Below are positions 7,055-50,759 of a stretch of 64,000 nt of DNA, one piece after another. Position 1 is the stretch's first letter, and each line of letters starts with the position of its first letter. Source of the DNA: Ylistrum balloti. Lineage: Eukaryota. The stretch spans positions 62,001 to 126,000 of the forward strand of contig NW_026782635.1 of the NCBI RefSeq assembly GCF_031769215.1, in the 5' to 3' direction. The translations under genes and the position numbers were made by a program. The notes under the pieces were generated by a model. The model made no database searches. It was not told the DNA's origin and saw only the letters and a program-made list of their open reading frames with translations.

Positions 7055-8190
7055 AATTTGCATCCCTGTAACCTTAATTTGTATCCCTGTAACCTTAATT
7101 TGTATCCCTGTAACCTTAATTTGTATCCCTGTAACCTTAATTTGTATCCCTGTAACCTTAATTTGTATCCCTGTAAACCTTAATTTGTATCCCTGTAACC
7201 TTAATTTGCATCCCTGTAACCTTAATTTGTATCCCTGTAACCTTAATTTGTATCCCTGTAACCTTAATTTGTATCCCTGTAACCTTAATTTGTATCCCTG
7301 TAACCTTAATTTGTATCCCTGTAAACCTTAATTTGTATCCCTGTAACCTTAATTTGTATCCCTGTAACCTTAATTTGTATCCCTGTAACCTTATTTTGTA
7401 TCCCTGTAACCTTAATTTGTATCCCTGTAACCTTAATTTGTATCCCTGTAACCTTAATTTGTATCCCTGTAACCTTAATTTGTATCCCTGTAACCTTATC
7501 CCTGTAACCTTTTTGTATCCCTGTAACCTTAATTTGTATCCCTGTAACCTTAATTTGTATCCCTGTAACCTTAATTTGTATCCCTGTAACCTTAATTTGT
7601 ATCCCTGTAACCTTATTTTGTATCCCTGTAACCTTATTTTGTATCCCTGTAATTTTAACTCACACCCCTTTAATCTTAATTCGCATCCCTTTAATCTTAA
7701 TTTGCATCCCTTTAATCTTAATTTGTATCCCTTTAATCTTAATTTGTATCCCTTTAATCTTATTTCGCATCCCTGTAACCTTAATTTGTATCCCTTTAAT
7801 CTTATTTCGCATCCCTGTAACCTTAATTTGTATCCCTTTAATCTTATTTCGCATCCCTGTAACCTTAATTTGTATCCCTTTAATCTTATTTCGCATCCCT
7901 GTAACCTTAATTTGTATCCCTGTAACCTTAATTTGTATCCCTTTAATCTTATTTCGCATCCCTGTAACCTTAATTTGTATCCCTTTAATCTTATTTCTCA
8001 CCCCTGTAACCTTAATTTGTATCCCTTTAATCTTAATTCTCACCCCTGTAACCTTAATTTGTATCCCTTTAATCTTATTTCTCACCCCTGTAATCTTAAT
8101 TTGTATCCCTTTAATCTTAATTCTCACCCCTGTAATCTTAATTTGTATCCCTTTAATCTTAATTCGCATTCCTTTAATCTTAATTCATAC
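7055..8190. repeat. 21-bp satellite turning into a 42-bp two-monomer higher-order repeat
   Basis: Unit atccctgtaaccttaatttgt; after ~7650 ctgtaacct and ctttaatct monomers alternate. Explains the YPCNLNL and IKIKGIQ ORFs. Confidence 0.95.
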
Positions 8191-8940
8191 AGTCTTTATC
8201 TGAATTCGAACAAAGTAAGAAAAAGAAATCACCTGTATATAACGCTATGAAATATCCGTTTCGTTTAAGTCTTTATGTACTGTAATCCTAAATTTGATTT
8301 CTGATGAATGCGATATGGAAAATGTCGTCTCAAGTCAACATTAATGTTTGATATATAATCAACAACATTATACGTAACATATAAGAAAAGGTAAAAGTGT
8401 TTCCATATATGAGCAAGATGGAAAGCAAATATCATTTTTCACCGTTGACCTCCTTGTATGACCTATGTTCTTGCATGACCTTTGAACTTTCTACTTATTT
8501 TACCTGTCCGAGAAAGACCTAACACTTCAGGCGGAGGATCACGATGAAATTAGACGTAGACAAAGGTAATGTACTGTAACACTATATATATTAGGCATGT
8601 ACATTTAGGTGTTAAATGATAACATCTTTAAGTTACCAGCATATTTGTCCGAGTTGACATTACATCGTACGTGTCAGCTAAACTTCTGCCCCTAACACGT
8701 GTCCCAGCCTGTTAAACACGAGCATGTAAACTTCTTTTAAAGATCCTATTTAACTGTTTTTAAATCTTAATATATGGTCAATGATGAACGAAATAATTAA
8801 AAGCGTCGCTATTTATCAATTGTCTTGTCAGTAAAACATAAGAACTTATCAATTAGATTAAAACACATATTATTACTATGAGTTATCTGATAACATCACT
8901 AGTGATTAAGTATTTTTTCTAATGATGATATAACTTTTGT

Positions 8941-10185
8941 ACATTCTGCCAATCAGAGCGGGGATTTCTAGTCACTCATTTCTGCCAATCAGAGTGGGGC
9001 TTTCTAGTCACTCAATTTTGCCGATCAGAGTGGGGCTTTCTAGTCACTCAATTCTGCCAATCAGCGCAGGACTTTCTAGTAATTCATTTCTACCAATCAG
9101 AGCGGGGTTTTCTAGTCACTCATTTCTGCCAATCAGAGCAGGACTTTCTAGTCACTTATTTCTGCCAATCAGAGTGGGGCTTGGAAGCACTGGAAGTTAA
9201 TTTGAAAAAAAAAAAATCAGAGCAGGACTGTCTAGTCACTCATTTCTGCCAATCAGAGCGGGGCTTTCTAGTCACTCAATTTTGCCAGTCAGAGCAGGAT
9301 TTTCTAGTCACTCATTTCAGCCAATCAGAGTGGGGCTTTCTAGTCACTCATTTCTGTCAATCAGAAGTGAAATTTCTAGTCACTCATTTCTGCCAATCAG
9401 AGCAGGACTTTCTAGCCATTCATTTCTGCCAATCAGAGTGGGGCTTTCTAGTCACTCAATTTTGCCAATCAAAGTGGGGCTTTCTAGTCACTCAATTCTG
9501 CCTATCAGAGCGGGGTTTTCTAGTCACTCAATTCTGCCAATCAGAGTGGGGTTTTCTAGTCACTCAATTCTGCCTATCAGAGCGGGGCTTTCTAGTCACT
9601 CATTTCTGCCAATCAGAGTGGGGCTTTCTAGTTACTCAATTCTGCCTATCAGAGCGGGGTTTTCTAGTCACTCAATTCTGCCAATCAGAGTGGGGTTTTC
9701 TAGTCACTCATTTCTGCCAATCAGAGCGGGTCTTTCTAGTCACTCAATTTTACCAATCAGAGCAGGATTTTCTAGTCACTCATTTCTGCCAATCAGAGTG
9801 GGGCTTTCTAGTCACTCATTTCTGTCAATCAGAAGTGAACTTTCTAGTCACTCATTTCTGCCAATCAGAGCAGGACTTTCTAGCCATTCATTTCTGCCAA
9901 TCAGAGGGGGGCTTTCTAGTCACTCAATTTTGCCAATCAAAGTGGGGCTTTCTAGTCACTCAATTCTGCCTATCAGAGCGGGGTTTTCTTGTCACTCAAT
10001 TCTGCCAATCAGAGTGGGGTTTTCTAGTCACTCAATTCTGCCTATCAGAGCGGGGTTTTCTAGTCACTCAATTCTGCCAATCAGAGTGGGGTTTTCTAGT
10101 CACTCAATTCTGCCTATCAGAGCGGGGCTTTCTAGTCACTCATTTCTGCCAATCAGAGTGAGGCTTTCTAGTCACTCAATTAAAA
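8941..10185. repeat. 36-bp satellite with CCAATCAG in most units and a 468-bp internal duplication
   Basis: Unit ttctgccaatcagagcggggctttctagtcactca(a/t); diagnostic variants tcagaagtga (9361, 9829) and tagccatt (9413, 9881) are both 468 bp (13x36) apart. Confidence 0.95.
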
Positions 10186-13100
10186 TTTGACGATTTTCTG
10201 GCTTGGAAGCACTGGAAGTTAATTTGAAAGAAAAAAAAAACTGTTGGCATGAAAAAAGAATACCGCCTTCAGTAGCCAATTCACAATTGCGTCATCTTGT
10301 TGTCATACGTAATATGCTGAATACTCGTGAGCTATATATATTTAAACAGGAAACCATTCAATATCTACTTATGTATATATACGTAATAATTTTTCTTCTC
10401 CTGTTTTGGGTGAAGACCACTAAAGTTTCAACAAAAATGATTTCGAGTTTCATAAATCAAATGCCAAAAATTGCATATTATTATGTAAGAAGGTATTTTA
10501 ATCATAATTTACCAGTTTTCATCAACGCAAATAGGAGTCGAGATAAGCAACTAATAAGTAGGTTTGTTTCCTAAATCTTTCATAAAGGCAACAACGTGTG
10601 ATCCACATGGGTTGCCTCGTTACCTTATGTAGGATATAGAGACGATAATATTAGTAAACGCATGTAAACATACACGGATCAAAGTTGAAATATTTCATAT
10701 TCCGGACAGTTGAGTATAAATAATTTTCAAATGCATGTTACTTAACCTTTACGTCAGGATTACAAGTTTTCTTGACCACCTGGCGTCCGGACTAGCGTGA
10801 TCCACGGTATATAATTGAGTTCAATATAAACAACGGTGATAAATAACGACATACGTACACGCTGTTAGACAAATGTCTGTAATTCAGAAACTTTATAATG
10901 AAGAATAAGAATTAATCTGCTTGATATGACGTTGTTTACCTATCCGCGAACCGAAGTCGTTAACTTCTGACTGTCGCGACATACGACGGAGGTGACTTGA
11001 TATGTTGCTTCTCATGTGTGTACGAAGAATATTTATCTTCTCAGTGCTTGTGAATGTGTACAAGTAAATGTCAAGTATTTGCGGAACCTTAATTATTTTT
11101 CTCACACACATATATTTCAGATTTCTTTAAACCTCTCCAACACATACAACTATTTCATGAATAGTTTAGAAAAGTGTTCTAGTAATAGCCACAAGGCGAA
11201 ACGTCCTTTATATGAGGTAGGGTTGAAAGAAAGGACACGCCACTTTTCAGAAGTGCGTACGAGAAAAGTATGTGACCATTTCAAGGATATATAAGATATC
11301 AGTATCCACAGATGAAATACACTGTATAATATCAATTCAACATAGGTTGATTGTTTTTTGTTTGTCATGCTGCCTCAGGTTAGTGCCACAATTGTTCGTA
11401 CAGGGCCAAACACATCCACAAGGTCGTGTCAATTACCAGACGGCACGTGTCCTTGAAAAACAATAACCATTTCATTGATGGTGCCTTTATGTTGTATCTT
11501 TATTTACATGAATCGTGATTGAAGTCGACAGAGCGCTTTGAAGAAATGTGAATCATTGATATTAAACAAATACCAAAGTAAAAATCAATTTCAACATTTG
11601 TTTAAGTCGACATAAGAATGATAAACATATCGTGAAAAATATTTTACCCAGAATTCTTCAGAGATTAAGTTGAAAAGCATGTACAGTGAATATGTTTAGT
11701 GTGTCTCCTCGTCAAGTCAGGGTCATTTTGAGGCAAAGTCTATTTGTAGTAACTGGCTTTTTCATACAGTGTTTTCGTCATGTGTTATCCTTAGCAATTT
11801 GGATAAAGGGCATTTCCCAAGAACACAATTACCACAGTAGCTGATAGTTAACGCCCCGAGAAGGGATTCTGATATCGCACTTTTGAGCTCCACCATGTAT
11901 CTATTCAAATTGTAAAATTGTCAAAAATGCTACAAAAATTGCAGATGTACTTAATTGCTTACCGCCATGTTTAAGTCTTCTGCTTGGCTCTGCTTTTCAA
12001 ATTCAACATGTGCACCATACCTCTGCTAGTGATTTTTTAAACTGAGACATGGTGTCCAGTCTACTAAATAAAATTACTAGACTTTCATGAAATCTATTAC
12101 TATTACTTTAAATCGCATGTCACTTGTGACGCCTTTAAATGGCAGTTTCATTTGAAGACCAAACTTTCGGCAGTAAATACATTTATGTCACTAGGGTCTA
12201 TATTTCACTGCAAAATGTGTATAAGCAGACGTCATAAGCATTGAACTATGCTGCCTATGGTGTTTATTATCGATATAAAGGACAAAAGTTGCAGATAAGC
12301 ATAGCATAATGCACAATATTAAAGTGAGAACATTGCTTATGGGTTATGCTTGTCTACCAAACGTTTTTATTGATTTCGGCCATAAAAACCAAACCTGGCA
12401 ATTTTATGTCTAAATAGGATTTATATTTACATACCACGAAAACAGCGAACAAATTAAAACAGTAAAATGGCTTGATTCTGCACATTTAGAAGAAAAAGGC
12501 TAAGTAGCTACTTGTCATTAAAAGCATTCCACCTATCTAAAGTCGGCTAAAAAAGCCTATACGGATTGCCAGAAGTAATGTCTATTTACAAAGTGTATCT
12601 AGGTTACGTCTATGTTTGAAGTTACTTTAAGTTTTAAATTATCTACAGCAAAGAGCCAAGCTGACTTGTAATTTAGCAATGTTGCCAGAGGGCTTCGTTA
12701 TTTGCATACAATTGTACACACGTTAAGGTATATAAAAGTAAATGGCAGCCATCAACTGGACTTAAATATTACGTTTATCATCTTTATGTGGTCAACATTG
12801 TCAAACTTTCAGGCGTGGAAGTCTAAATACAGATAAAAACAGCCACAGCTTCTGTTATTCTTAAGTAAATTTATAATTACAAGTAAGACATTTGAGTCAT
12901 TTGTGAAAACGCTAATGCACGATATTCGAAGCAATTTCCGCGTTAAAGTCTCATTCAGACGTATGGAACCAAGCGAAACACCAATCAGCGATATTTAGGG
13001 AATAAGGATATTGAGAACTAAATACAATAAAACATTGTGTGCCTAAATCCAATATCTGACGGAGCCGATTATCTCAAATTTACCATTGTTCATTAGTAGG

Positions 13101-18000: not shown

Positions 18001-20186
18001 ATTTAGACTAGGTTTAGGGATTTTTTAACGCCCCAAGATTTGTTATATGATTGGATAGTAGACTGTTTCTGGTTAAACGTCCTGAAATTGGTGCTATGGT
18101 TGGTATGTAGACTAGCGTCCATCACTTTTTGTTTTAGGTTTACCGTTCTAAAATTGATAATATATTTAGTTTTTAGACTAGCGATAATCATACTATAGCG
18201 GAGGTTTTAGACACCTATCGATTAGTACTGTAGAGTTGTAAGAAAATAACTCAATATTTTGTAGTGGTAATTGCTGGCGTACACCATTGCTTGTATACTG
18301 TATTTCTTTCATCATTATTCTTGCTCTTTGTTTATAACCGAGCTTCCACCAATATTATTTACTCTTTAGGTGAGCATACTGAAGCATTCCTTCGTCGCCC
18401 GGTTTGGGTTCATGCACATGAGCGCTACAAACGTTTGCGTTTGGTTTCGAGTCATTGTCGTGGAGACGCTTCATTCAATACACAGCCACAAAAAATCACA
18501 CCATTACGCCAGGTTGAACTCAACAAGAATAGGTAATTCTTTGTGTTAAAGAATGCAAAGAGGTTATTGATAAATTGTGATTATTGTGTCAGTTTTTTTA
18601 ATTATATGTCCATGGAACAGTTTATACGATGCTTTCCAAACACAATGTGTCAACTGTAAAGGGAACTACCGTCCTACTTGATAATCGTACTTCATTTCAA
18701 AACTTAATAACACAGTGAATGTCTGGATTCAAATTCACATCTAAGAGATATTTACAAAATCAACCTCCATACTTAATTAATGATAGGTAATAACTAAGCA
18801 AAACTTAAAAATATAACAATGTGATTGGTAAATTTGAGTTTACTCTTTCAGTGGAGCATAATGTAAGTCATAGTTGGATTAATCGGGAAATCGGGATGTC
18901 GTATTTCCCCGCACTTCCCGAACTTTCATGTCAGTGGAGCAATTTGATTGGTCAAGTTCTGCGGTCTGCAAGTCCCTACCTATATCCTTTCACTATTGAG
19001 TACAGCGTCATCTGCGCTGGTAAGTAGCCATTCTAACTTCCAAACTACAACAAGTAACGTCACCATATTAGTACTGTAAATCCGTTTTTGAGTTTTAAAA
19101 ATTTGTATTTTGACAAAAACTTGAAGCAAATCGATATATCTATAATTCGAGACTGGCAATATGGTCGTTGGACTATAATTGTCAATGGGCCGTAATATCC
19201 ACTAAAATGATAACAATAATTTGAGAAAGAGAAAATCGTATATTTTTGATGTACGAGAAAGCTACATGCATAACAACACGTTCTCATAATTCGCTCAAGA
19301 CACCAAGTTTTTTTTTTTGTTTTTTGCTTGTTTTGTTTTTGGTTTTTGTTTTTGTTTGTTTTTTTTGTTTTTTTTGTTTTTTTTTATGCCATAAGCAGTG
19401 TTTTTTATTCCAGGGATATTTTTTGTGATGTGGCAAAATGTCGGTATGACTTCTAAAAGGGCTTCAACAATTGATGACATACCACACAGCCACCATCTGA
19501 TCAGCATTGATTGTGCAAGCTCCAGTCGTGGCCTTTTTCTTGGAATTTTGACATTCGTTGCATCACTTGTTTCAATGATTATTTTTAGTGTCGTTGTACA
19601 GACAGACAACGAGAGTCAAGTGATCGTCCTAGTAGTTTATCTAAGTGAAATTATTGCATATATATTCATGATAATTGCATCTATTTTCGCTATGATTCGC
19701 ATGCGCCATTTAAAATTTTCAAGTAATTTAACCGACGAACTGGAAAAAATTTTGGCCTGGTTATCGTTCAGTGGACTTTTCATGTTTTCAGTCTTTAGTA
19801 TTTTTGCTGCAGTTTATTTCATTGACACTCTGGAAGCTGTCTTGACGATTGTAACAAGTATATTTTCAATGATACAAGCGACGCTTCAGACAATGTTGCT
19901 GATCATGGGAATGGGGATGTCAGCCGGAAGTCAAATGCACGCGACAAAAAAGTCGGGGAGAGAGTTCGTTACTTTCCTGCTCATGTGTAATATAACAATG
20001 TGGGCGAATACGACTTTTCAGATAAAGAATGTCGCCCACAACCCAGTGCAACTGCAGTTCTACGGACCGGAAGCCTGGGGAATATTCACCCATGTTTCAG
20101 TACCACTCTCCATCTTTTTCCGGTTTCATTCTACGGTGTGTCTTTCTCATATTTGGAAACACGCCTGGAAAATGAAACAGCAATAG
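15051..20186 (+). CDS. OTOP: Otopetrin-family proton channel (OtopLc-like), 7 exons found, ~590 aa; 5'-most exon not located
   Basis: Exons 15051-15180, 15592-15715, 16446-16692, 17469-17632, 18370-18532, 18852-19019, 19414-20186 all have AG/GT ends with matching phases. Joined frame contains otopetrin motifs LSGLYGILLVVIG, GSFFLRLGAVGFGIGSM, SQLFFIF, ARFGFMHMSATNVCVW, SPYLYPFTIEYSVICAGI, SGREFVTFLLMCNITMW, PLSIFFRFHSTVCL. An in-frame ATG (MVKCDGE) lies in the first exon found. Confidence 0.93.
15925..16005 (+). mobile_element. Penelope-like RT C-terminal remnant inside an otopetrin intron
   Basis: Translates with one frameshift as NFPF-LEINIPTSLTYSIDMSQLIR, homologous to 45010-45070 and 53980-54045. 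Confidence 0.7.
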
Positions 20187-31134: not shown

Positions 31135-33387
31135 TCAGTCTGGACATGTCTCGTTTAACTCTCTCCTGATAGTACTGTACACTAAGGCGAAAATGTGAAC
31201 CTCGGTCGCTTCACTTCGGGGGACCTGCTTCCACGCCGTATAAAAAGCCCTGAAAGCGTCCTCATATTCCTCCAGGCGTTGGTGACAGTACCCAAGTAGA
31301 TTGAATGCCACAGCCTTATTGGTGATGCCAGGAAGACTGCAGCACCACACCATATCGTCACGTGCCTTCAGCTGTTCTATGTTCTGATCTAACTTCAAAC
31401 AACACCAGAACCGAAGAAAACACGCGTACACGAGAGGATCAACAGCCACCGTATCCCGCATGCCAACAGTAACGTCATTAAGGTCGCTTTGACTTTGACG
31501 CGAGCACAATTCCAATTGTAAAGGCTGTGGCAAAATGTCTCTTTCAAATCGTAGGAACACGATGTCTGACAAAAATGGCACATACGAATCTGACCCATTT
31601 AGAACCGAATTTGCAAACTCCATAATGAAATTTGATAGACCTAATGGATTGTTTGTGGTTAGGATAGAATCAACTGGTAACTGTAAACGACCGTATGGCA
31701 ATTGTTTCATTTGTGAAATAAGCGATCTTAATATTTCGTTGCTGGTAATAATGTTACCAACAACGACGTTCAGGTGACAAATAATGACATGTTCCATTAA
31801 ATCCTCTATCCGACTGAATCTGCACGCTGGCAATATCGTGTCTTTATACCGTGGCTTGCATTCTGAACTTAGATTCGTATTCATCCACAGCAAGCGGTTA
31901 CGAATCAGTTCAATTTCCGTTGTAAGACATCGCACTTCTTGCAGGGGAATGTCATGTTTTGAGGATATATTCTTTATTTCGACACATGTTTTGCCACAAT
32001 ATTCTATAGCTTTTTGTAATGTTTGCTGACATGACAATGGTACTCTAATGAAACTACTCACCTCTTCACACAGTATCTTCATTTGTATTGAAAAGAGGCG
32101 TGTTCCTAACGGTAACACTATGTCCAAGTCTTTAGTATCTAATGCTACCTCCTCCATGTATCGCGACCTAAATTCGTCACTGAATGGCGTTGTTTCACAC
32201 AATAAAACTCGTGTGTTCACTCTAGTGAAAATACATACTTTAAGTACAGTCTGTTTTTCTGTAGCGGTGTACCTCTTCGTCAATAGATTACACGTGCGGA
32301 TGAAATAGTTTGGACAGAAGTCCTCTTGTATACAGGAAATAATCCTGTTTAAACACATCTTGACTGTTTGGAGAAGTCGATTTGGAACCCAGAGGTCGGG
32401 AGGGGATTCCTCTATCACCCAGAAAACGATAGTCTTCAGGATGTAGGACGAAATTATGTCTCCTATTTTGTCCTGAAACACGAAGGTTTTAAGTTGTTTT
32501 AATAATAATAAGCATTTTATTTGAGTTGAGTTGAAGTCCAAAACTAGGGCTTGCTCGACAAGAGCAAACGACAGTCTCCAATCTAGATACTGTCGATCAC
32601 ATTCTTTACATCCGACTGGGACGACGTAGCACCCACAATTTGTATGTTTTGATATGAAATCATTAGATGGCCAGCCATAGGAACGCTTTCGTGTAATCCA
32701 TTCTTCCGCAACCGAGGGCCAAACAGGACAAAAAATAGAAATCACATTATCGACCTTATTCATTACAAAAGTACCTCGATTGTTCATTCCACTTGTCACA
32801 CGAGACAATGCTGGCCCTGTTACGATCTGATTTCTCAGTGCATTTTCTATTTGCATGCTTCGAAAGTACATGTCAAACATATTAATGGGTCCTCCAAAGT
32901 TATTCATAGTGGCAGGAATCGCATTTGATAAATAGTGAGTATTTGTTTCTTCCTCGTATTCAAAAAAGGTAGATATAGAGGTTGAAACTGGAAGTGTAAA
33001 TACCGTTCCTTCTTGAAGAACTTTCAGTTTGACGTAGCCAAGATTGGTTATGCAAGGTTCCATATGAAATTGCCAGCGATCTGCAGGAACATGAATATTA
33101 CTATCTTCATATGCCTCACATTTTGAAAGAACTAGCATCATGTCAATATCACATGAAGTACAATTGTAACTTGAAAATAGCAGAGTTCCTTCTCCCATAC
33201 TCCCTATGAGTCTTCCTTTAATACCTAAAGCAGGCATTCCTGATGTGGTATATTGGATATCAGCAAAGAAATTATACAGCTGACAACAATGTCGGTTATT
33301 CATTAGAGAAAATTCTGAATATCCGGCATCATCAAGAATATTACTGATCGCCAAACTGGCTACCGCGGGATCTTCATCAGTTTCCAT
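31135..33387 (-). CDS. cGLR: cGAS-like receptor (cGLR; Mab-21/cGAS-DncV-like nucleotidyltransferase) with ~370-aa C-terminal helical/TPR-like extension, 750 aa, no introns in the CDS
   Basis: Uninterrupted ORF. NTase motif LIGSMGEG...SCDIDMMLV and third acidic residue in KVDNVISI; Mab-21 motifs WPSVAEEWITRKRSYGWP, YVVPVG, WRLSFALVEQ, LLLLKQLK, SSYILKTIVFW, CPNYFIRTCNLL; TPR-like AVAFNLLGYCHQRLEEYEDAFRAFYTAW. The ORF-track start (33414) is TTG; first ATG is at 33387, just after a good acceptor (ttccatttctttgaag, exon edge 33395). Confidence 0.92.
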   Translation of the reverse strand: METDEDPAVASLAISNILDDAGYSEFSLMNNRHCCQLYNFFADIQYTTSGMPALGIKGRLIGSMGEGTLLFSSYNCTSCDIDMMLVLSKCEAYEDSNIHVPADRWQFHMEPCITNLGYVKLKVLQEGTVFTLPVSTSISTFFEYEEETNTHYLSNAIPATMNNFGGPINMFDMYFRSMQIENALRNQIVTGPALSRVTSGMNNRGTFVMNKVDNVISIFCPVWPSVAEEWITRKRSYGWPSNDFISKHTNCGCYVVPVGCKECDRQYLDWRLSFALVEQALVLDFNSTQIKCLLLLKQLKTFVFQDKIGDIISSYILKTIVFWVIEESPPDLWVPNRLLQTVKMCLNRIISCIQEDFCPNYFIRTCNLLTKRYTATEKQTVLKVCIFTRVNTRVLLCETTPFSDEFRSRYMEEVALDTKDLDIVLPLGTRLFSIQMKILCEEVSSFIRVPLSCQQTLQKAIEYCGKTCVEIKNISSKHDIPLQEVRCLTTEIELIRNRLLWMNTNLSSECKPRYKDTILPACRFSRIEDLMEHVIICHLNVVVGNIITSNEILRSLISQMKQLPYGRLQLPVDSILTTNNPLGLSNFIMEFANSVLNGSDSYVPFLSDIVFLRFERDILPQPLQLELCSRQSQSDLNDVTVGMRDTVAVDPLVYACFLRFWCCLKLDQNIEQLKARDDMVWCCSLPGITNKAVAFNLLGYCHQRLEEYEDAFRAFYTAWKQVPRSEATEVHIFALVYSTIRRELNETCPD

Positions 33388-35427
33388 GTTGATGTCTTCA
33401 AAGAAATGGAACAATGTATTAATTTTTAATCACGCTATACCGTCGAATATTGTTAATTAAGATAATTCATTATGAATATCTTAATATCATATATTCGTAT
33501 ACAGATAATATTTTTTATTGATTAAAACAGCGACCGATTCCATGAAATCAATATATAGGGGTATAGAGGTGTAAGAAAACATGGAAATTCATTATTTCAT
33601 CTAGAATCTATTCGAATGATTGCTAGATAACAGTTATGTCGATCAATTTAAAGATATTTCTAGAAATATGTTTATCAGTCTCTAGGAAACTGGGATGTAA
33701 TGTAATTAAAACCATTGTTTACAAGCCCATCGAAAGCCAAAACAAAGCGGCGATATGATGACTTTTATTATCATTATGTGTTTTGTTCCTAAATCTTTAT
33801 TGTTTTTAAACACATTGTGTTGTACTATAAAGGTCTATTCCTTAAGCTTTACATAACTGACAGGTCGTAGCATTACTATGGAATGCGTGTGATATTAACT
33901 TTTTAATTGCCGTTGTATATCACTTAAAATACTCAGTTGTTTACCAAAATGATCGACCCAACCACAATATTTATTGGTCCCATTTCTAAGGCATTTGTTT
34001 ACAGTATTTCCTGAGCCTAAGTCAGTATTGCGTAAGTTGATAACCGAATATGAAAGTTGAGATCACTATAAACACAAAGACATCATGCTGGCTTAATTTA
34101 GTTATACATGTAAAACGTCCTTTTAACAAACAAGGTAAATCTCTATAAATGGGATAACTGAGTGACAACTTGATACTGTCATCTTACCGAAATGCCATAC
34201 ATTGCATACGATGAATCACATGCAAATACTCTTCCTGAGCAGGAATAAGCGAGAATGGCGTGTCCTTATTCAGCATTCAATTTTACCGTTACTACTTAAC
34301 ACCGAGCAGGACCATATAACTTCTATAAGACACGGTGAAAATTCCTTGTTGTTCCTCCAAAGTGAATATTATATTATAAACAGATTAAACATACAATCAA
34401 CATGCAGGTAAGAATAATTGAGATTAGTTATTGTACAATCGAAAAGATATCGATTGGTAAACAAAGTGATTTGTATTTTTGCTACTATTTGATGCAATTC
34501 TAATGCAAACTATTAAATATCTTCACTTGCAAATGCATTCTTTAGTGTTCTTCTCAATAAGGTACTTGTGAAATCTAAGTCCAGCTACATAAATCTACAT
34601 TTCATTTTACAGTACATTTACAAATTGGTCATCTCGCATTCAAATATATGTCGAAAACTACGCATGATAGAAGCTTTTTGAAATATACAATCTAAAATGA
34701 TTTTAAGTTAAATCTGTTTAGACGGCGGATAATATGTTTGTTTTATGCATATATTGGATATGAGATAATAAATTCTGTAGAGTTCTTTCGATTTCGTCTC
34801 GTATCTAAAATAAATTCCATTATCAAATCTCCAGTATATGCATAAAACAAGCAAGCCATCCCCTAATTAGTAATGATATAGTGAAAACGATAATACACAG
34901 TCTTTGTCAAAAGGATGATAGATTTTTTAAACATTATTCGTTATGATTAAGAACTAATTAAGTGATACTAAAAACTATAGTAACATTAACTTTTCCGTTC
35001 ATTTATTGATTTGATTGAGGTAAAGAAGCAGTATTTGACATAACCAATAACATTCTCTCACCGTACCGACTACTAGTCTGTTTTATAATTCGGCAAGTTT
35101 GCCTTTAATTCTATGGCAAATACACCTATATATCATATAGGGGAATTGGGTGACTGTGGAACAATGGACACCTAAAAACCGTTGAATGAATAGTATATCT
35201 TTTAGTAAATCTACCCATGGATACAGATATTAAATGTATAAAACTCGATTTTGCGTTGATCCAGGTGTGCCACGCTAAAAATATTAAATGGTATATATAT
35301 TATGGGATTATGTGAAATTTATTTATCAGTTCGTAGGATATTCTCAATATAACTAATATAGTTTCACAAATGTTTCTGATTGGCATTTTAATCACTAGAA
35401 GCATAATGACGTTTTAATTACTTATTC

Positions 35428-37850
35428 CACATTACATGTTAGCTTCACTCCGTACCCACATTGCTTCTCACTATTTTTTATTTTACATTTATATGTACCC
35501 ACATTACATGTTAGTCTTCATAAGTCCATTCGACATACACTGTTATCACTTTAAAAAAATATAAAATCAAAATGATCCACATTTTCATACCCACATTACA
35601 TGTTTTTTTCACATTACACTTCACGTTCCACATTACATGTTAGCTTCACGCTTACCCCACATTACATGTTAACTTCACTCCGTATCCACATTACATGTTA
35701 ACTTCACTCCGTACCCACATTACATGTTAACTTCACTCCGTACCCACATTACATGTTAGCTTCACTCCGTATCCACATTACATGTTAACTTCACTCCGTA
35801 CCCACATTACATGTTAACTTCACTCCGTACCCACATTACATGTTAGCTTCACTCCGTACCCACATTACATGTTAGCTTCACTCCGTACCCACATTACATG
35901 TTAGCTTCACTCCGTACCCACATTACATGTTAGCTTCACTCCGTACCCACATTACATGTTAGCTTCACTCCGTACCCACATTACATGTAAACGTCACCCG
36001 GTATCCACATTACATGTTAGCTTCACTCCGTACCCACATTACATGTTAGCTTCACTCCGTACCCACATTACATGTTAGCTTCACTCCGTACCCACATTAC
36101 ATGTTAGCTTCACTCCGTACCCACATTACATGTTAGCTTCACTCCGTACCCACATTACATGTTAGCTTCACTCCGTACCCACATTACATGTTAGCTTCAC
36201 TCCGTACCCACATTACATGTTAGCTTCACTCCGTACCCACATTACATGTTAGCTTCACTCCGTACCCACATTACATGTTAGCTTCACTCCGTACCCACAT
36301 TACATGTTAGCTTCACTCCGTACCCACATTACATGTTAGCTTCACTCCGTACTCACATTACATGTTAGCTTCACTCCGTACCCACATTACATGTTAGCTT
36401 CACTCCGTATCCACATTACATGTTAGCTTCACTCCGTCTTCACTCCGTACCCACATTACATGTTAGCTTCACTCCGTACCCACATTACATGTTAGCTTCA
36501 CTCCGTACCCACATTACATGTTAGCTTCACTCCGTACCCACATTACATGTTAGCTTCACTCCGTACCCACATTGCATGTTAGCTTTACTCCGTACCCACA
36601 TTACATGTTAGCTTCACTCCGTACCCACATTACATGTTAGCTTCACTCCGTACCCACATTACATGTTAGCTTCACTCCGTACCCACATTACATGTTAGCT
36701 TCACTCCGTACCCACATTACATGTTAGCTTCACTCCGTACCCACATTACATGTTAGCTTCACTCCGTATCCACATTACATGTTAGCTTCACTCCGTACCC
36801 ACATTACATGTTAGCTTCACTCCGTACCCACATTACATGTAAACGTCACCCGGTATCCACATTACATGTTAACTTCACTCCGTATCCACATTACATGTTA
36901 ACTTCACTCCGTATCCACATTACATGTTAGCTTCACTCCGTACCCACATTACATGTTAGCTTCACTCCGTACCCACATTACATGTTAGCTTCACTCCGTA
37001 CCCACATTACATGTTAGCTTCACTCCGTACCCACATTACATGTTAGCTTCACATGTTAGCTTCACTCCGTACCCACATTACATGTTAGCTTCACTCCGTA
37101 CCCACATTACATGTTAGCTTCACTCCGTACCCACATTACATGTTAGCTTCACTCCGTACCCACATTACATGTTAGCTTCACTCCGTACCCACATTACATG
37201 TTAGCTTCACTCCGTACCCACATTACATGTTAGCTTCACTCCGTACCCACATTACATGTTAGCTTCACTCCGTACCCACATTACATGTTAGCTTCACTCC
37301 GTACCCACATTACATGTTAGCTTCACTCCGTACCCACATTACATGTTAACTTCACTCCGTACCCACATTACATGTTAGCTTCACTCCGTACCCACATTAC
37401 ATGTTAGCTTCACTCCGTACCCACATTACATGTTAGCTTCACTCCGTACCCACATTACATGTTAGCTTCACTCCGTATCCACATTACATGTTAGCTTCAC
37501 TCCGTACCCACATTACATGTTAGCTTCACTCCGTACCCACATTACATGTTAGCTTCACTCCGTACCCACATTACATGTTATCTTCACTCCGTACCCACAT
37601 TACATGTTAGCTTCACTCCGTACCCACATTACATGTTAACTTCACTCCGTATCCACATTACATGTTAACTTCACTCCGTATCCACATTACATGTTAACTT
37701 CACCTACTATCCACATTACATGTCTACGCTCATTTCACCTGCTATCCACATTACATGTCTACGTTCATTTCACCTGCTATCCACACATTACATGTTAGCT
37801 TCACTTTGTATCCACATTACATGTTAGCTTCACTTACCCGGTTTCCACAG
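35428..37850. repeat. ~2.4-kb homogeneous 29-bp satellite
   Basis: Unit gttagcttcactccgtacccacattacat, nearly invariant in the centre and degenerate at both edges. Confidence 0.97.
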
Positions 37851-50155: not shown

Positions 50156-50759
50156 AGTAACCTAAACCACATTATATCAACTGAGACACGTATACACAGT
50201 TCTACTTACCGATACCCATGGAAGTTACCTAAACCACATTATATCAACTGAGACACGTATACACAGTTCTACTTACCGATACCCATGGAAGTTACCTAAA
50301 CCACATTATATCAACTGAGACACGTATACACAGCTCTACTTACCGATACCCATGGAAGTTACCTAAACCACATTATATCAACTGAGACACGTATAAACAG
50401 CTCTACTTACCGATACCCATGGAAGTTACCTAAACCACATTATATCAACTGAGACACGTATACACAGCTCTACTTACCGATACCCATGGAAGTTACCTAA
50501 ACCACATTATATCAACTGAGACACGTATACACAGCTCTACTTACCGATACCCATGGAAGTTACCTAAACCACATTATATCAACTGAGACACGTATACACA
50601 GCTCTACTTACCGATACCCATGGAAGTTACCTAAACCACATTATATCAACTGAGACACGTATACACAGCTCTACTTACCGATACCCATGGAAGTTACCTA
50701 AACCACATTATATCAACTGAGACACGTATACACAGCTCTACTTACCGATACCCATGGAA
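50156..50759. repeat. 67-bp tandem repeat, ~9 nearly identical copies
   Basis: cctaaaccacattatatcaactgagacacgtatacacagctctacttaccgatacccatggaagtta at 50161, 50228 and onward. Confidence 0.97.

Follow-up and report, generated by a model that had tools for sequence, protein, structure and literature searches.

We know of no ligand for most animal cGAS-like receptors (cGLRs). The domain architectures of these proteins were surveyed by Li et al. (2023, PMC9980059), according to whom 87% of cGLRs are single-domain proteins and some carry tetratricopeptide or ankyrin repeats. The tetratricopeptide repeat (TPR) appears there as an architecture class drawn from conserved-domain hits, and none of the proteins assayed in that study is a TPR fusion. 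An isoelectric point (pI) above 8.5 was reported for the cGLRs that sense double-stranded DNA (dsDNA) or RNA (dsRNA); for acidic cGLRs the same authors predicted non-nucleic-acid ligands, an idea left unresolved there. Here we describe a gene of the scallop Ylistrum balloti on the reverse strand of a 64,000-nucleotide stretch of contig NW_026782635.1 (hereafter the window). Its predicted product joins a Mab-21 nucleotidyltransferase (NTase) core to a long helical tail with a TPR-type end, and the gene is a further member of this catalogued yet uncharacterised architecture.

In the cGLR-TPR class of Li et al., as in the scallop protein, tetratricopeptide repeats stand behind a Mab-21/cGLR core whose active site is putatively complete, and the scallop protein comes from the bivalve expansions which that study describes. 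It differs in lying outside the strict motif spacing of that study, and its subfamily may be the one counted there. The first-pass annotation of this DNA had called the C-terminus uncharacterised and rated the novelty of the protein too high, because the class is already catalogued in that source and the architecture is bivalve-wide. Since it is catalogued there but not characterised, the suggestion of that annotation that the tail may be a ligand-sensing or autoinhibitory module is left standing.

Sp-cGLR1 of Stylophora pistillata (8GJY) and vertebrate cGAS are single-domain, basic and activated by nucleic acids, whereas the scallop protein is acidic, lacks the zinc thumb, and is lengthened by some 40 additional residues inserted in the N-lobe and by the 350-residue tail. 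Human MB21D2 (7LT1), the second-best PDB sequence match (E 1.5e-9), likewise belongs to the Mab-21 proteins; it retains a putative active site and has no known ligand or product. It has no TPR tail, and its sequence similarity to the scallop protein is confined to the C-lobe. The shrimp proteins LvMab21-1, LvMab21-2 and LvMab21-3 (PMC12928593) resemble our proposed reading of the scallop protein in being invertebrate Mab-21 immune proteins that do not act as nucleic-acid sensors. They were reported to act by binding IKK-epsilon, without cyclic GMP-AMP (cGAMP) synthesis, whereas the scallop subfamily keeps the catalytic motif, a distinction drawn from their published description. For the tail, the nearest known systems include TPR peptide receptors and three-TPR co-chaperone modules (PlcR 2QFC, FKBP52, CHIP and Sgt2).

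Results

The gene occupies a single open reading frame (ORF) at 31135-33414, which comprises 759 amino acids if counted from an upstream TTG. From the ATG at 33387 it encodes 750 amino acids without interruption and ends with a stop codon at 31135-31137; the ORF list and translation thus bear out the frame and start proposed by the first-pass annotation. This ATG also agrees with the conserved N-terminus of the Argopecten homologues. No other non-repeat ORF in the window exceeds 262 amino acids, and the window GC content is about 35%, so that a frame of 750 codons is not a chance ORF. All four coding sequences inspected, from the Y. balloti gene and three Argopecten irradians homologues, are single-exon. 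A fusion created by the gene model was considered and ruled out, since the genomic frame is continuous and the architecture occurs in more than 50 cluster representatives. Judged from its sequence, this is probably a functional, intact and intronless gene of a pectinid scallop.

The first-pass annotation had called the product a cGLR, had placed its catalytic residues at G62-S63, D80, D82 and D213, and had suggested profile searches for Mab-21 and TPR and a structure prediction as checks. Direct translation puts all of these residues at those positions, and the cGLR identity is now backed by scans for protein families, by the predicted fold and a search with it, and by conservation over about 59 diverged relatives. 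Pfam Mab-21_C matched residues 290-381 (E 1.3e-14) and the Mab-21 NTase domain matched residues 197-281 (E 7.8e-5), the latter at 23.3 bits, slightly below the 24.1-bit cut-off. Among PDB sequences the best matches were, in order, Sp-cGLR1 (E 1.2e-13), MB21D2 and MAB21L1, with numerous cGAS entries after them, and all were confined to residues ~200-385. A profile of the cGLR-TPR family reached cGAS with an E-value of 5e-13 over positions 145-384. Even with this profile the GS/DxD region of the solved structures was not reached, and the region was therefore examined by structure prediction.

The full-length AlphaFold2 (AF2) model (predicted local distance difference test [pLDDT] 74, predicted template modelling score [pTM] 0.67) contains a complete cGAS fold that matches cGAS across the whole catalytic domain and stops near residue 400, with the catalytic residues in the expected elements. 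D213 was aligned to the VD of Sp-cGLR1 and cGAS in phmmer and hmmsearch alignments. We compared 59 family representatives with pairwise identity of at most 50% (range 15-50%). G62 and S63 are each conserved in 51 of them, D80 and D82 each in 53, and the third Asp in 56; the full set of GS, DxD and third acidic residue is present in 50. The active site is thus apparently intact by sequence and model.

Li et al. (2023) recognise cGLRs by structural homology to a known cGLR or CD-NTase enzyme, by homology that spans the NTase core as well as the C-terminal helix bundle, and by a GS motif with three acidic catalytic residues. Structural homology of this kind is present in the predicted model, the Pfam and family-profile matches extend over both parts, and G62-S63, D80, D82 and D213 provide the motif and the acids. 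The strict pattern of that study, h[QT]GS-X8-20-[DE]h[DE]h-X50-90-h[DE]h, does not match the scallop protein, which reads L-I-G-S, X16, D-I-D-M, X130, V-D-N, with Ile in place of Q/T and Asn at the last position. The spacing of 130 residues between DxD and the third Asp (79-132 across the family) is due to a poorly conserved insert in the N-lobe (Table 1).

The core of the scallop protein has a pI of 5.1-5.4, against a median of 6.3 in the family, where a value above 8.5 was seen in only 5 of 57 cores. The first 60 residues, spine helix included, comprise 8 acidic and 3 basic ones, and the cGLR-TPR family shows a gap where the zinc thumb of cGAS aligns. A pattern H-x4-C-x6-C-x2-C is formed by H248, C253, C260 and C263 (window 32599-32646) in the loop preceding the WRLSF motif. 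It is distinct from the cGAS zinc thumb, which follows WRLSF and is absent here. Because the pattern is kept in pectinid members only, a zinc knuckle as a family-wide feature was rejected; by its sequence it might be a lineage-specific zinc site.

About 350 of the 750 residues (about 400-750) lie beyond the fold, in line with the earlier statement that about half of the protein follows the Mab-21 domain, and form an all-helical solenoid in a confident model. A tail-only AF2 model built from 59 sequences (pLDDT 82, pTM 0.81) is helical throughout except for one short insert at residues 601-645, which has short strands as well as helices and a block pLDDT of 62-95. Conservation is uneven. Identity to the A. 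irradians paralogues is 28-40% over residues 421-600, the lowest of the protein, and 73-82% over the last 100 residues, the highest. The TPR-like character that had been read into the C-terminus found support in the family: Pfam TPR_1 or TPR_2 matched 20 of the 59 homologous tails with a best E-value of 1e-9. In the scallop protein itself TPR_1 matched weakly at residues 692-718 (E 0.041). Compared with the 34-residue TPR consensus under the usual residue sets, residues 692-725 fit at positions 4 (F), 7 (L), 8 (G), 20 (A), 24 (F), 27 (A) and 32 (P); position 11 is His. A Foldseek search of the tail model against the PDB gave no match under E 0.03, and in the ESM Atlas the whole tail domain was common to mollusc Mab-21 clusters only (template modelling score 0.68). 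Sequence and model therefore describe a helical tail with a TPR end, which is like generic TPR proteins only and has no specific functional relative.

A tail profile made from 9 sequences (residues 375-750) was searched against 1.84 billion representatives and found 138 proteins in three groups. The first consists of 63 proteins, mostly of 600-1025 amino acids, which also have the Mab-21 core. The second comprises short fragments or stand-alone copies, and the third ordinary multi-TPR proteins that aligned solely at profile positions 305-350, where the terminal repeat lies. The named members belong to Ylistrum, Saccostrea, Crassostrea virginica, Potamilus (Unionida) and Mercenaria (Venerida), and all are annotated "uncharacterized". 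The full architecture was thus found in scallops, oysters, a freshwater mussel and a hard clam.

Some relatives depart from this architecture. Two close paralogues of A. irradians, P0005 (494 amino acids) and P0008 (454 amino acids), carry the NCBI name "cGAS-like receptor" and are cut within or before the tail; by sequence, the tail is lost or cut in these copies. In P0109 of Mercenaria mercenaria (1025 amino acids) a trypsin-like peptidase domain (Trypsin_2, E 1.4e-5) at residues 772-968 comes behind the Mab-21 core and the tail; this protein represents a cGLR-TPR-protease fusion or else results from the merging of gene models.

Neither a stop nor a frameshift appears in the contigs that span the gene in four DNA runs; the differences are substitutions, apart from a single 3-nt deletion at 33179 that keeps the frame. 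At least 32 substitutions were counted in four individuals, 14 synonymous and 18 nonsynonymous (ratio of nonsynonymous to synonymous polymorphism, pN/pS, ~0.35), a count that may include some paralogue contigs. Against the Argopecten paralogues the ratio of nonsynonymous to synonymous substitution rates (dN/dS) was 0.14-0.21. Region-wise Nei-Gojobori estimates were 0.10-0.13 for the NTase C-lobe, 0.05-0.25 for the TPR end, 0.19-0.42 for the NTase N-lobe and 0.30-0.46 for the variable helical middle, but synonymous sites are saturated whenever the window gene is one of the two sequences compared, and only the P0003-P0004 pair is quantitatively reliable. By this region-wise method positive selection was not detected, dN/dS being below 1 in every region. 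These sequence comparisons indicate that both the enzyme half and the tail half are under purifying selection. Together with the identity profile they argue that both halves are functional, and that the tail has a fast-evolving part and a nearly frozen part.

In the same four DNA runs the contig depth rose from ~14 to 40-110 over 31276-31463 and 32404-32497, the most conserved coding segments. Loose contig ends there run into other sequence, and one contig links 31434 to 32371. The rise in depth shows that several paralogues share both segments at 90% nucleotide identity or more. Such common tracts could reflect gene conversion.

Table 1. Positions of the features of the scallop cGLR gene and its predicted product within the window.
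Feature	Residues	Window position	Strand	Remarks
Complete single-exon coding sequence		31135..33387	-	750 codons and stop; ORF list and translation
Predicted cGAS/Mab-21 nucleotidyltransferase fold	10-400	32188..33360	-	Spine helix, NTase N-lobe, C-terminal helix bundle
NTase GS motif	G62-S63	33199..33204	-	Context LIGSMGEG; where strand 56-61 meets helix 62-65 in model
Catalytic acids 1 and 2	D80-I81-D82	33142..33150	-	Context CDIDMM; strand 79-93 in model
N-lobe insertion	126-190	32818..33012	-	pLDDT partly <50; least conserved, most gapped region
Catalytic acid 3	D213	32749..32751	-	Context KVDNV; strand 209-220 in model
Fast-evolving helical middle	421-600	31588..32127	-	Helices 424-452, 457-477, 482-507 and more hairpins (AF2 models)
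Conserved non-TPR insert	601-645	31453..31587	-	Pattern F-x3-E-x4-P-x2-L-x2-E, Glu nearly invariant (59-sequence tail alignment)
Conserved TPR-type end	646-745	31153..31452	-	Two helical hairpins and capping helix
One canonical TPR	692-725	31213-31314	-	7/8 TPR consensus positions

The region upstream of the gene was searched for regulatory signals. Patterns of the interferon-stimulated response element type were not enriched in the window (25 matches vs. 16 expected), and none was close to the start. The upstream 500 bp had no block in common with one A. irradians homologue. In the scallop gene and in the A. irradians homologue, the ATG is directly preceded by a pyrimidine-rich tract that ends in AG. 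This hints at an intron in the 5' untranslated region, in which case the promoter may be located elsewhere. A perfect 16-bp palindrome, ATATTTCTAGAAATAT, occurs at 33654-33669, about 270 bp upstream of the ATG. Its core, TTCnnGAA, resembles a heat-shock element or a STAT-like site, and ~100 bp from it on the gene (downstream) side there is a TATATAT stretch. Conservation of the palindrome was not found in one A. irradians homologue.

Elsewhere in the window, a 262-amino-acid ORF lies at 19398-20186 on the forward strand, ~11 kb from the cGLR gene. Pfam Otopetrin matched it with E 2e-65 over the C-terminal half of the profile (positions 188-434 of 434), and by this match the ORF is probably the final large exon of a gene for an otopetrin proton channel. 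Satellite arrays are found at 695-2903 (36-bp unit, 65 copies), 7055-8185 (21/42-bp unit, 53 copies), 8944-10178 (36-bp unit, 34 copies), 35628-37834 (C-rich 29-bp unit, 76 copies) and 50156-50759 (67-bp unit, 9 copies, 99% identity). The C-rich array accounts for a spike in GC content and skew at 36-38 kb, and the long "ORFs" at 7333-10190 are satellite repeats read through. A search of the whole window against Rfam at gathering thresholds returned no family.

Discussion

With moderate confidence, we propose that the gene encodes a cytosolic cGLR of a bivalve-wide subfamily, in which a Mab-21 nucleotidyltransferase is joined to an alpha-solenoid of ~350 residues, sends a cyclic nucleotide to STING and responds through its tail to a trigger that is not a nucleic acid. 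When activated, the enzyme would condense nucleoside triphosphates into a cyclic di- or oligonucleotide, and this product would signal via one of the scallop STING proteins; 3-5 STING genes are listed for Pecten and Mizuhopecten (Li et al. 2023, Table S5, PMC9980059). The acidic core, a spine helix that is not basic and the absence of the zinc thumb lead us to infer a trigger other than double-stranded nucleic acid. A protein or peptide ligand may be read by the tail, with the hypervariable helical middle conferring the specificity of each paralogue. The near-invariant TPR end would bind a partner common to all paralogues, which might be a host protein or the conserved C-lobe of the enzyme itself, and this contact would couple ligand binding to the active site. 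In a bolder form of the proposal the tail is itself a pattern-recognition module, so that a protein or peptide derived from a pathogen or from danger binds the solenoid and switches on the cGAS-like enzyme. We regard this form as possible but doubtful.

The main rival, which we consider unlikely, is that the protein is a non-enzymatic Mab-21 scaffold. It would signal by protein contacts, for example through a TBK1/IKK-epsilon-type kinase docked on the TPR tail, and its NTase pocket would at most bind nucleotides. The three cGAS-related shrimp Mab-21 proteins set a precedent, since they activate IKK-epsilon directly without nucleic acid binding or cGAMP (PMC12928593); TPR domains are protein-interaction modules, and the strict spacing of the cGLR motif is not seen in the scallop protein. 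Yet 50 of 59 relatives at 15-50% identity still have GS, DxD and the third Asp together, which is hard to explain without catalysis or at least the binding of metal and nucleotide, and the predicted fold agrees with cGAS throughout the catalytic domain. The same core might instead belong to an ordinary dsRNA- or dsDNA-sensing cGLR, whose tail serves merely for localisation, oligomerisation or downstream docking. The nearest solved sequence relative is indeed the dsRNA sensor Sp-cGLR1 (E 1.2e-13), and dsRNA sensing is described as a widespread ancestral mode of cGLRs. Against this stand a core pI of 5.1-5.4, compared to more than 8.5 in the known nucleic-acid-sensing cGLRs, the excess of acidic residues in the first 60 (8 vs. 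3 basic) and the missing zinc thumb, and we judge such a sensor to be distinctly unlikely.

The gene could also be a silent or decaying paralogue, a dispensable copy in an over-expanded family whose frame is still open. The family is large, contains truncated copies (P0005 and P0008) and has lost part of the motif in 9 of 59 representatives, and no conserved promoter block was seen in the comparison with the A. irradians homologue. However, a frame of 750 codons would not persist neutrally in DNA of 35% GC. The four individuals differ only by substitutions and one in-frame 3-nt deletion, with pN/pS of ~0.35, and dN/dS against the Argopecten paralogues is 0.14-0.21. A silent or decaying copy is thus highly improbable.

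The scallop gene establishes no new principle; it offers one intact, single-copy, intronless representative that is usable as a test construct. If the tail does act as a pattern-recognition module, these proteins would be the first cGLRs shown to be activated by protein and not by nucleic acid, and the paralogue-specific tails would form a receptor repertoire. With its conserved active site, its acidic core and a tail of hypervariable and invariant parts, the TPR-tailed bivalve subfamily is a practical test case for non-nucleic-acid ligands of cGLRs.
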